In this document: positions 42,640 through 53,235 of the stretch, piece by piece
Layout of the letters: each line of letters begins with the position of its first letter
How positions within the stretch are numbered: the stretch's first letter is position 1
Assembly (NCBI GenBank): GCA_002269645.1
Contig: NIVC01000719.1
Coordinates: forward strand, 176,020-240,019
Length of the DNA: 64,000 nt
Reading direction: 5' to 3'
Source: Macrostomum lignano
Lineage: Eukaryota
The notes under the pieces: model-generated
The model's input: only the letters and a program-made list of their open reading frames with translations
Database searches by the model: none
What the model was told of the DNA's origin: nothing
Made by a program: the position numbers and the translations under genes

Positions 42640-45178
42640 AATTAGCAACCATGAACACCCTCCTAACAATTAGCAACCATAAGCACCCTCCTAACAATTA
42701 GCAACCATAAACACCCTCCTAACAATTAGCAACCATAAACACCCACCTAACAATTAGCAACCATAAACACCCTCCTAACAATTAGCAACCATAAACACCC
42801 TCCTAACAATTAGCAACCATAAACACCCACCTAACAATTAGCAACCATAAACACCCTCCTAACAATTAGCAACCATAAACACCCTCCTAACAATTAGCAA
42901 CCATAAACACCCTCCTAACAATTAGCAACCATAAACACCCTCCAAACAATTAGCAACCATAAACACCCACCTAACAATTAGCAACCATAAACACCCTCCT
43001 AACAATTAGCAACCATAAACACCCACCTAACAATTAGCAACCATAAACACCCTCCTAACAATTAGCAACCATAAACACCCTTCTACCAATTAGCAACCAT
43101 AAACACCCACCTAACAATTAGCAACCATAAACACCCTCCTAACAATTAGCAACCATGAACACCCTCCTAACAATTAGCAACCATAAACACCCACCTAACA
43201 ATTAGCAACCATAAACACCCACCTAACAATTAGCAACCATAAACACCCTCCTAACAATTAGCAACCATAAACACCCTCCTAACAATTAGCAACCATAAAC
43301 ACCCACCTAACAATTAGCAACCATAAACACCCACCTAACAATTAGCAACCATAAACACCCTTCTACCAATTAGCAGCCATAAACACCCACCTAACAATTA
43401 GCAACCATAAACACCCTCCTAACAATTAGCAACCATAAACACCCTCCTAACAATTAGCAACCATAAACACCCACCTAACAATTAGCAACCATAAACACCC
43501 ACCTAACAATTAGCAACCATAAACACCCTCCTAACAATTAGCAACCATAAACACCCTCCTAACAATTAGCAACCATAAACACCCACCTAACAATTAGCAA
43601 CCATAAACACCCACCTAACAATTAGCAACCATAAACACCCTCCTAACAATTAGCAACCATAAACACCCACCTAACAATTAGCAACCATAAACACCCTCCT
43701 AACAATTAGCAACCATAAACACCCTCCTAACAATTAGCAACCATAAACACCCACCTAACAATTAGCAACCATAAACACCCTCCTAACAATTAGCAACCAT
43801 AAACACCCTCCTAACAATTAGCAACCATAAACACCCACCTAACAATTAGCAACCATAAACACCCTCCTAACAATTAGCAACCATAAACACCCTCCTAACA
43901 ATTAGCAACCATAAACACCCACCTAACAATTAGCAACCATAAACACCCACCTAACAATTAGCAACCATAAACACCCTCCTAACAATTAGCAACCATAAAC
44001 ACCCTCCTAACAATTAGCAACCATAAACACCCACCTAACAATTAGCAACCATAAACACCCACCTAACAATTAGCAACCATAAACACCCTTCTACCAATTA
44101 GCAACCATAAACACCCACCTAACAATTAGCAACCATAAACACCCTCCTAACAATTAGCAACCATAAACACCCTCCTAACAATTAGCAACCATAAACACCC
44201 ACCTAACAATTAGCAACCATAAACACCCACCTAACAATTAGCAACCATAAACACCCTCCTAACAATTAGCAACCATAAACACCCTCCTAACAATTAGCAA
44301 CCATAAACACCCACCTAACAATTAGCAACCATAAACACCCTCCTAACAATTAGCAACCATAAACACCCACCTAACAATTAGCAACCATAAACACCCTCCT
44401 AACAATTAGCAACCATAAACACCCTCCTAACAATTAGCAACCATAAACACCCTCCAAACAATTAGCAACCATAAACACCCACCTAACAATTAGCAACCAT
44501 AAACACCCTCCTAACAATTAGCAACCATAAACACCCTCCTAACAATTAGCAACCATAAACACCCTCCTAACAATTAGCAACCATAAACACCCTCCTAACA
44601 ATTAGCAACCATAAACACCCTCCTAACAATTAGCAACCATAAACACCCTCCTAACAATTAGCAACCATAAACACCCACCTAACAATTAGCAACCATAAAC
44701 ACCCACCTAACAATTAGCAACCATAAACACCCTCCTAACAATTAGCAACCATAAACACCCTCCTAACAATTAGCAACCATAAACACCCACCTAACAATTA
44801 GCAACCATAAACACCCACCTAACAATTAGCAACCATAAACACCCTCCTAACAATTAGCAACCATAAACACCCTCCTAACAATTAGCAACCATAAACACCC
44901 ACCTAACAATTAGCAACCATAAACACCCTCCTAACAATTAGCAACCATAAACACCCTCCTAACAATTAGCAACCATAAACACCCACCTAACAATTAGCAA
45001 CCATAAACACCCTCCTAACAATTAGCAACCATAAACACCCTCCTAACAATTAGCAACCATAAACACCCACCTAACAATTAGCAACCATAAACACCCACCT
45101 AACAATTAGCAACCATAAACACCCTCCTAACAATTAGCAACCATAAACACCCTCCTAACAATTAGCAACCATAAACAC
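42640..45178. repeat. 28-bp minisatellite AACAATTAGCAACCATAAACACCC(T/A)CCT (~90 copies)
   Basis: Unit offset of 28 checked; the array overlaps the TLR stop codon. Confidence 0.98.
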
Positions 45179-51100: not shown

Positions 51101-53235
51101 CAGCTGGCGACTGCCGAGGGCCAGAGGGTCCAGCCGGCTGATGCGGTTGTTTTGCAGGTGGAGGACGTTCAATGACACCTGGAGCAAGTGATTGATGGTT
51201 CTATTAATTCTTGTACAGGCTTGCGTAGCTTTCCTGTACTGATATTTCATTCTTGTACGGGCCTATGTAGCTTTCTAGTACATCTTTTTTATTTTCCTGT
51301 ACAGGCTGTGTAGCTTTCTGGTACATGGTTCTTATTTTCCTGTACAGGCTGTCTCATTCTGGCACATGGTTTTTTAAATTTCTTGTACACAAAGTGCAGC
51401 ATTCTGGTACATGGGGTTCTTAAATTTCTTGTACACAATGTGCAGCATTCTGGTACATGGGTTTCTTAACTTTCTTGTACACAATGTGCAGCATTCTGGT
51501 ACATGGGTTTCTTAACTTTCTTGTACACAATGTGCAGCATTCTGGCACATGGTTTCTTAACTTTCTTGTACATAATGTGCAGCATTCTGGTACATGGGTT
51601 TCTTAACTTTCTTGTACACAATGTGCAGCATTCTGGCACATGGTTTCTTAACTTTCTTGTACACAATGTGCAGCATTCTGGTACATGGGTTTCTTAACTT
51701 TCTTGTACACAATGTGCAGCATTCTGGCACATGGTTTCTTAACTTTCTTGTACACAATGTGCAGCATTCTGGCACATGGTTTCTTAACTTTCTTGTACAT
51801 AATGTGCAGCATTCTGGTTCGTGGGTTTCTTAAATTTCTTGTACACAATTTGCAGCATTCTGGTACATGAGTTGTTCACCTGATGCCACGGCTGCAGCGC
51901 TCCAATGGCTTCAATTCTGTTGTTGGACAAGTCCAACACCCTTAACGACAGCCAGACAGCCCGGAACCAGTAGCACAGGTGCGGCCAGCCCGCCTCACAG
52001 GTGTCCGAGCTGTACAGACTGACTATCCGGTTGCTGCTCAAGTTCAGGCTGCTCAGCCGGTCCAGCAATCCGGCCGGCCCCGCAGGCACGCGGGTGAGCC
52101 GGTTGCCGGACAGGTCCAAGCTGAAAATTGCTGACGACCGCGGCAGTGGCTTGTCGGCATCGGCGCTCTTGACAAGCCAGCGGTGTCCGAGGAGCAGGGA
52201 GAACCGGACAGGTGGCCGCAGAGTGGCATTGTCCATCCGGGAGTAGAGGCTGGCCAGGCTGTCCACGCGGCCGTGGGCAGCGAGGCGGATCAGACGGTGC
52301 AGCGCCAGGCGGGTGAGGCCGCCAGTCCAGGCCAGAGACGAGTTCGAGCCGACGCAGGCGGTTGCTGGGTCCGGCGCGGTCAGACAGGCGGTCAGAGCGG
52401 CCAGGGCGGCTGCGGCCGAGTCGGCCAGGCTGTCGTCAGTCAGGCCGCTGTCCACCAGCTCCAGCGCTACGCCGCCGCCACCGTCGCCGGGCAAAGACGA
52501 CAGCCAGGCGGAGCTGTCGGCTGCGATAGCGGCTGCCACAGTTGGAGATTGGCGGATTCGAACTCCGGATAGCCGGGTGCACCGGGACAGAGCGCGGCGT
52601 ATCTCGTCGAAATGGCAACAGCGGCCACCTGTCCAGGAAACGTTCGCGAGGCTCAACTCCAGAAGTCGGCAGTCACCTGTGGCGCCTACTTCAACATCGT
52701 CGGGATAGTCAATAGTGGTGAGGTAGCCGCCGACCCCAGGCGACTCCGGGGGTCCCAGCTGCGCTACCGACATCACCGACGTCTGTCGAGTTCGACAAGA
52801 AGTCAACGTCGAGTTGCTGCAGCGGCTGGCTGCAATCAGACAGCCGGTGGCGGCGACTTGCAGAGGCGGAGCGCCGGTCCTGCCAGCCGGCCGGGCCCGG
52901 GTGACAGCGTCCAGGTGTACCATGGCGCAGTTTAGACATCCGCTGCAGTCCAGCGTCAGGCTGTTGACCACTCGGTCAGGCAGCTGGGAGCACGGCACCC
53001 GATCCGTAGATCTTGCGTCATCATTATTTAGCGGCCAGATTCGGCAGACATAGTCGAACTCCGTGTCTGTTGTGAGCTGTTCGCACAGGCAGGCATGGGA
53101 GGCTGTGTAGTTTGGCAGCAATTCGAAGTACTGCTCCGAGCTGGCCGAGTTCTGGGTTGCTGCGACGGCCAGCAGAGAAAGCAGCGAAGGCAGAAATTGC
53201 CGAGTTAAGAAAACAACTTCTTGGCAGAACTTCAT
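45162..53235 (-). CDS. Divergent Toll-like receptor: signal peptide, LRRs, LRRCT-LRRNT cysteine cluster, LRRs, LRRCT, TM, TIR, second TIR/SEFIR-like domain (~1355 aa, 6 exons)
   Basis: Exons 53235-51880, 51178-50517, 49941-49528, 48751-48263, 47216-46702, 45793-45162; phase-compatible, 4068 nt. The track start at 53241 is TTG; the ATG is at 53235. LRRs such as LDLSGNRLTRV, LNLSSNRI, LDLSNNRI, LHLQNNRI, LSLQRNLL, IDLSDNQL. Internal PVCDC...DFLC then CPTVRNCTARCLHGCACY; second cap WLSGNPWRCSCD; TM ASLAMAIGLLIGLAW; TIR FDVFL...EGIRLSHCVVILLSEAFW. The exon 4 and exon 6 acceptors were chosen for frame. Confidence 0.82.
45822..46670. repeat. 28-bp (2x14) minisatellite GGAGGACAGACAATAGAAGACAGACATT
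   Basis: Fills TLR intron 5. Confidence 0.95.
47285..47600. repeat. (TGTC)n at 47285-47368 and 39-bp repeat GAGAAATAAAGCCGATATGTATCGAAAAATATAAAACTA at 47395-47600
   Basis: TLR intron 4. Confidence 0.92.
47842..48076. mobile_element. hAT-like MITE (235 bp)
   Basis: ~80-bp imperfect TIRs starting CAGGGACTACTAAAACTAGG and ending CCTAGTTTTAGTAGTCCCTG; flanking 8-mers GTCTAGGT and GTCAAGTT match at 6/8 positions. Confidence 0.7.
48750..49515. repeat. (CTAAA)n pentanucleotide satellite with CTGAA variants
   Basis: Fills TLR intron 3; reads (TTTAG)n on the sense strand. Confidence 0.97.
49945..50510. repeat. (CAGA)n microsatellite
   Basis: Makes up essentially all of TLR intron 2. Confidence 0.98.
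51255..51870. repeat. 45-46-bp minisatellite TTTCTTAACTTTCTTGTACACAATGTGCAGCATTCTGGTACATGG
   Basis: Fills TLR intron 1, more degenerate toward the acceptor end. Confidence 0.95.

Follow-up and report, generated by a model that had tools for sequence, protein, structure and literature searches.

Here, we describe a gene of the flatworm Macrostomum lignano that encodes a candidate Toll-like receptor (TLR), a receptor type that surveys have reported as absent from flatworms. The stretch of DNA analyzed (the window) comprises 64,000 nucleotides (nt) of contig NIVC01000719.1 (assembly GCA_002269645.1, positions 176020-240019), and the gene occupies window positions 53235-45162 on the minus strand, equivalent to contig positions 221181-229254. 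The locus is probably an intact, unannotated gene encoding a type I membrane receptor that belongs to the Toll/TLR family, specifically to its protostome (P-type) or multiple-cysteine-cluster (mcc) kind. Its predicted product combines a leucine-rich repeat (LRR) ectodomain, a single transmembrane (TM) helix, a divergent Toll/interleukin-1 receptor (TIR) domain, and a further conserved C-terminal domain. A preliminary description of the window, prepared without knowledge of its origin, had guessed at Macrostomum. This guess was borne out: the spliced product of a neighboring gene for mitochondrial glycerol-3-phosphate dehydrogenase (GPD2; 665 amino acids [aa]) matches M. lignano BOX15_Mlig010624g3, a protein encoded on NIVC01000719.1, with 100% identity across 99% of its own length, and the window is base-identical to this contig over the 17,912 nt that were compared. 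The analysis below supports a probable further member of the TLR kind in a phylum reported to have none.

Six open segments on the minus strand join into a single stop-free frame through canonical GT..AG sites, as the preliminary description had proposed, and these joins keep the frame throughout. Exon 1 (51880..53235, aa 1-452) begins with an ATG at 53235 and was delimited by its open reading frame (ORF) and junctions, Pfam LRR matches, hydropathy, and an N-terminus collinear with that of a paralogue, UniProt A0A1I8HAC1. Exon 2 (50517..51178, aa 453-673) carries LRRs followed by the first LRRCT, and exon 3 (49528..49917, aa 673-803) an internal LRRNT and approximately three LRRs, as placed by alignment, Pfam LRR_8, and a scan for LRR motifs. 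Exon 4 (48263..48751, aa 803-966), also collinear with A0A1I8HAC1, encodes a second LRRCT, the TM helix, and a basic juxtamembrane stretch. Exon 5 (46702..47216, aa 966-1138) supplies the divergent TIR domain and a linker, and exon 6 (45162..45793, starting at 45793 or at 45730/45727) the conserved C-terminal domain and the stop codon. The predicted receptor has 1347 aa with the exon 6 acceptor at 45793 and 1326 aa with that at 45730, rather than the 1355 aa given earlier.

Junctions 49528/48751 and 48263/47216, singled out earlier for scrutiny, are the frame-keeping choices. The acceptor of exon 4 falls between TTTAG and TTCAG (48751); an AG located 5 nt downstream (48746) was rejected because it breaks the frame. 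A donor for intron 2 inside the cysteine codon of the FLC motif, homologous to that of the paralogue, was likewise discarded, as its use would shift the frame of exon 3 and abolish the LRRNT. Two acceptors had been described as ambiguous, yet 48263/47216 is unambiguous, and the ambiguity that does exist lies at exon 6. There, the acceptor with the best polypyrimidine tract (45811) leads to a stop three codons on, which would truncate the protein at 1140 aa. Coding periodicity is evident in all six exons, including exon 6, with GC content at third codon positions (GC3) of 0.72-0.83 exceeding that at first positions, which in turn exceeds that at second positions (0.44-0.56); intron GC is 24-51%. 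The predicted six-exon structure is intact and provides an LRR ectodomain, an mcc-type cysteine cluster, and a single TM helix.

The LRRs proposed for the ectodomain were recovered by Pfam. Matches to LRR_4 (E 2.8e-9) and LRR_8 (E 1.6e-8) in exon 1 and to LRR_8 (E 1.9e-12) in exon 2 lie above the gathering threshold, and a further LRR_8 match in exon 3 falls slightly below it (23.6 bits vs 27, E 4.5e-5). A motif scan identified 11 LxxLxLxxNxL motifs, arranged as eight regular LRRs at aa 370-580 and three at aa 720-800. Preceding the first LRRs, which start at aa 370, is a cysteine-rich head (aa 28-369) with no Pfam match. Only two hydrophobic segments were detected by Kyte-Doolittle hydropathy, with starts near aa 7 and aa 910. 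These correspond to a signal-peptide-like N-terminus (aa 1-27, 53155-53235) and to the TM helix of exon 4 (aa 913-935, 48355-48423), giving a type I topology with a putative N-terminal signal peptide and one helix that separates the ectodomain from the cytoplasmic domain.

Between the two LRR blocks lies a cysteine cluster that matches, column by column, the LRRCT-LRRNT junction of three canonical mcc-type TLRs. The alignment contained the receptor, its paralogue, and three canonical mcc TLRs carrying Pfam TIR domains (P0003, P0005, and P0019), which in our reading resemble Drosophila Toll-6/7/8 and 18-wheeler; it upholds the earlier assignment of this cluster to the Drosophila Toll/mccTLR type. 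The invariant positions are C597, C599, C634, FLC661, C681, C685, C689, C691-Y, W697, and C704. They include the cysteines of the first LRRCT (CxC..C..FLC; aa 597-661, 50552-50746) and the signature of the internal LRRNT (C..C..C.CY..W..C; aa 675-704, 49824-49913). The second, membrane-proximal LRRCT (NPWRCSC..; aa 823-897, C823..C897) is located downstream of the cluster and precedes the TM helix. P-type/mcc TLRs are defined by more than one LRRCT together with an internal LRRNT (PMC8609888), and this is the arrangement of the predicted ectodomain.

On the cytoplasmic side, we conclude that exon 5 encodes a true, if highly divergent, TIR domain (aa 967-1102, 46808-47215), related to known TIRs by remote homology and lacking a strong match. 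A profile of the domain and its paralogous counterpart was compared by hhalign with canonical TLR TIRs, the target consisting of six canonical sequences (three invertebrate, human TLR1 and TLR2, and one TLR15/TLR2 entry). The match had a probability of 70.9% (E 3.8e-5) and, when repeated locally, 83.7% (E 8e-6, score 38.2). Scores of column-shuffled controls (n = 300) were 11.9 +/- 2.2, peaked at 20.8, and never reached the observed 38.2. The match, which is in the correct register, spans box 1 (FDVF) through strand C (VVILLSEAF), and MAFFT independently places exon 5 over the TIRs of canonical TLRs. An AlphaFold 2 (AF2) model of the domain (predicted local distance difference test [pLDDT] 72, predicted TM-score [pTM] 0.70) contains five alternating strand-helix units, in what we read as the order expected of a TIR. 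Searched with Foldseek against the Protein Data Bank (PDB), the model returned the TIR domain of TIRAP as its top match (E 2.5e-3, TM-score 0.61 on the target), with the TIRs of MAL, TcpB/BtpA, and SIGIRR among further matches. A sequence profile of the domain retrieved no TIR from the PDB, and PADLOC and NCBIfam scans gave no relevant match.

Several results weigh against a TIR domain here and against a functional Toll receptor more broadly. Pfam TIR_2 matches the exon 5 domain at 15.6 bits (E 0.023) and 13.9 bits, under the cut-off of 28; PF01582 (TIR) does not match it, and the cytoplasmic region of the paralogue has zero Pfam matches even at E <= 10. With a hidden Markov model (HMM) built from three canonical TIRs, the exon 5 ORF ranks first among 908 ORFs of the window, at a non-significant E of 0.76. 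The AF2 input was a five-row alignment that included canonical TIRs, so the model is not independent of them. In the Foldseek list, Rossmann-like folds are intermixed at similar E-values, and no PDB match to the exon 5 model reaches E <= 0.001. Of the signaling motifs, box 1 is kept (FDVF), but box 2 (the BB loop, RDxxPG) is degenerate (HCDGGPPSQP, with the prolines retained and RD lost), and box 3 (FW) retains W alone (GDWRHSL). At the level of the gene, the model is a prediction from genomic sequence, and the exon 6 acceptor is ambiguous between 45793 and the in-frame alternatives 45730 and 45727. A phmmer search with the exon 5 peptide found no relative among 1.84 billion representatives (three matches, two of them tandem-repeat translations and one an unrelated repeat-rich protein), a result that fits an unannotated gene and also one that is not expressed. 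The TIR domain named in the preliminary description therefore fared unevenly: it was not recovered by PF01582 and was under threshold with TIR_2, but it was clear by hhalign, TIR-like in its AF2 topology, and closest to TIRAP in structure.

Some of these results would also be accommodated if the cytoplasmic domain were a generic flavodoxin- or Rossmann-like alpha/beta fold and the protein an LRR receptor for adhesion or guidance, akin to chaoptin or to Toll ectodomains, without TIR signaling. The subthreshold Pfam score and the Rossmann-like folds at similar E-values agree with such a protein, as does the fact that chaoptins make up most sequence matches to the ectodomain. We nevertheless judge it decidedly unlikely. 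The profile-profile match to TIRs far exceeds the shuffled controls and is in register, the domain is placed directly after the TM helix exactly as a TIR is in TLRs, the internal LRRNT bears the Toll-specific signature C.CY..W..C, and the top structural match is itself a TIR domain.

The C-terminal domain encoded by exon 6 (aa ~1170-1335, 45201-45698) is 33-35% identical to the C-terminus of the paralogue, through the terminal WLD.VLY, and is as conserved as the protein overall. We assign this domain to the gene because of its conservation with the paralogue and its coding periodicity. By eye, it contains stretches reminiscent of box 1 (DIFVL) and strand C (QVVVIATDSLL). A second-TIR (twin-TIR) reading of exon 6 was rejected: hhalign against canonical TIRs yielded probabilities of 0.4-11%, and 32 of 300 shuffles reached the score. 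Comparison with the first TIR of the same protein revealed no similarity (probability 0.2%), a sequence profile of the domain found no TIR in the PDB, and its AF2 model (pLDDT 54) had no Foldseek match. The domain is predicted, from a low-confidence model, to adopt an alpha/beta fold.

The nearest relative of the receptor is A0A1I8HAC1, a 1330-aa M. lignano protein machine-named "TIR domain-containing protein." The two are 28% identical over 96% of the model (E 5e-109) and collinear from end to end without a frameshift; the receptor is an old, fast-evolving paralogue of A0A1I8HAC1. The 90%-identity cluster of A0A1I8HAC1 includes A0A1I8JIR6 (1332 aa) as well as the GenBank proteins PAA61380.1 and PAA88685.1. 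Of these GenBank proteins, the former (914 aa) is LRR-only and stops immediately ahead of the TM helix because a 45-nt intron is read through, and the latter (847 aa) begins at an internal Met. Although NIVC01000178.1 encodes the full 1330 aa of the paralogue at 7915-12803, GenBank calls only the 847-aa product there, and both GenBank models of the paralogue are truncated. The expectation that gene predictors would split such genes was thus realized for the paralogue, which is present as fragments of 914 and 847 aa, but not for the window locus, for which no model was found. A full-length homology search with the window protein gave no self-match, and six exact look-ups in a 15-billion collection (three full-length models and three read-through or truncated models) found none. 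The receptor locus looks unannotated, at least with respect to its TIR exon; a model of an LRR-only fragment is possible, as the homology search favors proteins of query length.

The split of the paralogue among GenBank models is also what might be seen if the window contained at least two separate genes, one LRR-only (exons 1-4) and one carrying only the TIR or a domain of another kind (exons 5-6), that merely appear joinable, and the joining of the window exons is likewise predicted from the genome sequence. This arrangement is highly improbable. The full 1330-aa protein of the paralogue has the same order of parts and is encoded at one contiguous locus, and in the window all phases match. 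Moreover, exon 5 has neither a start codon nor a signal of its own, and it begins exactly at TIR box 1 after the juxtamembrane exon.

The introns of the receptor gene are dominated by repeats, to an extent slightly less general than had been claimed. Intron 1 (51179..51879; 701 nt, GT..AG, phase 0) consists to 89% of a 46/91-bp tandem repeat, intron 2 (49918..50516; 599 nt) to 94% of (AGAC)n, which is (GTCT)n on the coding strand, and intron 3 (48752..49527; 776 nt) to 93% of (ACTAA)n. Intron 5 (45794..46701; 908 nt with the acceptor at 45793) is 93% covered by a 14/28/42-bp tandem repeat. The statement that every intron is repeat-filled accordingly holds for introns 1, 2, 3, and 5 (0.89, 0.94, 0.93, and 0.93) but not for intron 4 (47217..48262; 1046 nt), in which tandem repeats, namely five copies of a 39-bp unit and (TGTC)n, make up 29% (0.29).

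Repeats of the GACA/GTCT type recur in introns 2, 4, and 5 (49945-50509, 47282-47368, and 45818-46658, respectively), as (AGAC)n in intron 2, as (TGTC)n in intron 4, and in intron 5 as a 14/28/42-bp unit built of GACAGACAATAGAA. None are found in the introns of the paralogue. This looks like one microsatellite family spreading among the introns of a single gene. Adjoining the receptor gene is a 28-bp satellite (44000-45179; 42 copies, 97% matches), and the last five codons of the receptor (..GVYGC) together with its TAA stop (45162-45164) lie inside the first unit. The natural C-terminus of the receptor may have been replaced upon insertion of the satellite, because the last codons and the stop sit within that unit; the C-terminus of the paralogue is 12 residues shorter, ending after WLDGVLYKK. 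Approximately 1 kb upstream of the receptor ATG, in the putative promoter region, is a 57-bp tandem repeat (54250-54815; 9.8 copies, 97% matches).

These satellites bear on the main rival to a Toll receptor gene, namely that the locus is a silent or decaying copy. Under this explanation, the gene would be a young pseudogene, a paralogue that is not expressed or is in decay; its frame would still be open with the help of 64% GC, but its satellite introns would have rendered it unspliceable or silent. Introns that are 89-94% satellite, unlike the short, clean introns of the paralogue, speak for it, and so does a stop codon within a satellite unit. Database coverage points the same way: the exon 5 protein was not found in the 1.84 billion representatives, nor the exact or read-through models in the 15-billion collection, and no matching model was found in the GenBank annotation, which was presumably built from transcript evidence. 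Against decay, however, the 1347 codons in six exons contain zero stops or frameshifts, and periodicity persists in each exon, exon 6 included. All structural cysteines and the TIR core positions common to the paralogue and canonical TLRs are retained, and 10 of 10 splice dinucleotides are canonical. We therefore regard a pseudogene as unlikely and favor an intact Toll-family receptor gene.

If the gene is functional, its mode of action can be sketched by analogy with known Toll receptors. The LRR ectodomain would bind a ligand, be it of microbial origin or an endogenous protein similar to Spaetzle, and the receptor would dimerize as a result. The cytoplasmic TIR domains, brought together in this way, would serve as a scaffold for a TIR adaptor (MyD88, for example) and for downstream kinases. 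In Drosophila Toll, signaling is modulated by a C-terminal extension, and by analogy the C-terminal domain of the receptor may do the same. With its degenerate BB loop, the receptor may or may not retain the classical adaptor interface, and its putative output could be either immune or developmental.

In comparative immunology, flatworms are the textbook bilaterian phylum without TLRs. Orus-Alcalde et al. 2021 counted 0 TLRs in M. lignano with a pipeline that selects proteins by TIR HMM first, and took this result as an argument that Platyhelminthes lost their TLRs early (PMC8609888). Flatworms were also reported to lack TLRs by Saco et al. (PMC10279657) and in a 2021 planarian review (PMC7958881), in line with the statement in the preliminary description that surveys have generally reported no canonical TLRs in the flatworms examined. 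Our reading of literature on Macrostomum or flatworms with TLR, TIR, or MyD88 yielded no description of a flatworm LRR-TM-TIR protein. The count of 0 TLRs for M. lignano in HMM-first surveys is explained by a TIR that lies under the curated HMM threshold; a curated HMM at threshold is the operational criterion of the published surveys, and the window TIR falls short of it. The family is overlooked in the literature found but present in databases. The claim of an overlooked flatworm TLR consequently stands with regard to the literature and needs qualification with regard to UniProt, where the paralogue has long been listed as a "TIR domain-containing protein."

The balance tilts slightly toward a scenario in which Macrostomorpha, an early-branching lineage, kept a small, fast-evolving clade of mcc Tolls, with at least two paralogues that are 28% identical, an extra C-terminal domain, and a TIR whose divergence has taken it under HMM thresholds. 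Should these genes be functional, the published loss of TLRs at the base of Platyhelminthes would be wrong: TLRs would have been lost at a later point, or other flatworms would harbor equally cryptic TLRs still to be discovered. A candidate LRR-TM-TIR gene, together with a second, unrecognized one in UniProt, would move or remove the loss event. The case also illustrates a failure mode of TIR-HMM-first surveys, which overlook divergent TIRs and also gene models that repeat-filled introns have broken up. For a model of regeneration and stem cells, the gene offers a candidate pattern-recognition or developmental Toll receptor.

Beyond the receptor, the window contains several other genes. GPD2 is located at 1874-7954 on the minus strand, with at least five exons in the part seen. 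Other M. lignano GPD2 copies are 78-84% identical to that of the window, and those of molluscs ~63%; an old duplication has been reported for the M. lignano genome, and the 78-84% copies fit it. A gene for a Nab2-type CCCH zinc finger protein lies at ~14194-18553 on the plus strand (Pfam zf-CCCH_2, E 8.6e-19) and has a 784-aa product in GenBank; in our reading, the protein may be ZC3H14-like. The C-terminal exon of EXOC4/Sec8 was identified at 60551-61072 on the minus strand (PDB 8ay2, E 1.6e-11), and the gene probably extends to 64000. Its 3' end is ~7.3 kb upstream of the receptor ATG. Matches of TAL effectors to the EXOC4 ORF were dismissed, as they include no significant stretch and look compositional. 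In two blocks of ~61% GC (28000-30000 and 39800-41050), overlapping ORFs in several frames are densely packed, and the ORFs tested from these blocks have no Pfam match. These blocks may be further unannotated exons or GC-rich low-complexity DNA.

Three known systems lend themselves to comparison with the receptor. Twin-TIR TLRs were reportedly found in molluscs by Gerdol and coworkers in 2017. The window receptor is similar to these in that its first TIR is followed by another conserved domain, of ~170 aa, but this second domain lacks significant similarity to canonical TIRs. With P-type/mcc Toll receptors, it shares an LRR ectodomain with an internal LRRCT-LRRNT, in which the cysteines, FLC, C.CY, and W are invariant, followed by a membrane-proximal LRRCT, one TM helix, a TIR, and a long post-TIR tail. 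It differs from them in an LRRNT without the CC.FDACDCEM core, in 370 N-terminal aa without a recognizable LRR HMM match, and in a TIR that is under the Pfam threshold, with a degenerate box 2 and a box 3 reduced to W. Its tail is also distinct, being a conserved domain predicted, with low confidence, to be alpha/beta rather than low-complexity sequence.

The closest parallel is A0A1I8HAC1, from the same species. Four of the five intron positions are not common to the two genes, and the five introns of the paralogue are 45-486 nt long and free of satellites, whereas those of the window gene measure 599-1046 nt and are mostly satellite. Codons are GC-rich in the window gene, and the paralogue looks AT-richer, as judged by eye from its residues. 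The window protein has one LRR fewer ahead of the second LRRCT and a shorter linker, and its locus, unlike that of A0A1I8HAC1, has no database protein that was found. The two genes nonetheless have intron 1 at an identical position and phase, after QPWH(Q/G), and their products share the same succession of parts: signal peptide, cysteine-rich head, LRRs, LRRCT-LRRNT, LRRs, LRRCT, TM helix, divergent TIR, linker, and C-terminal domain.

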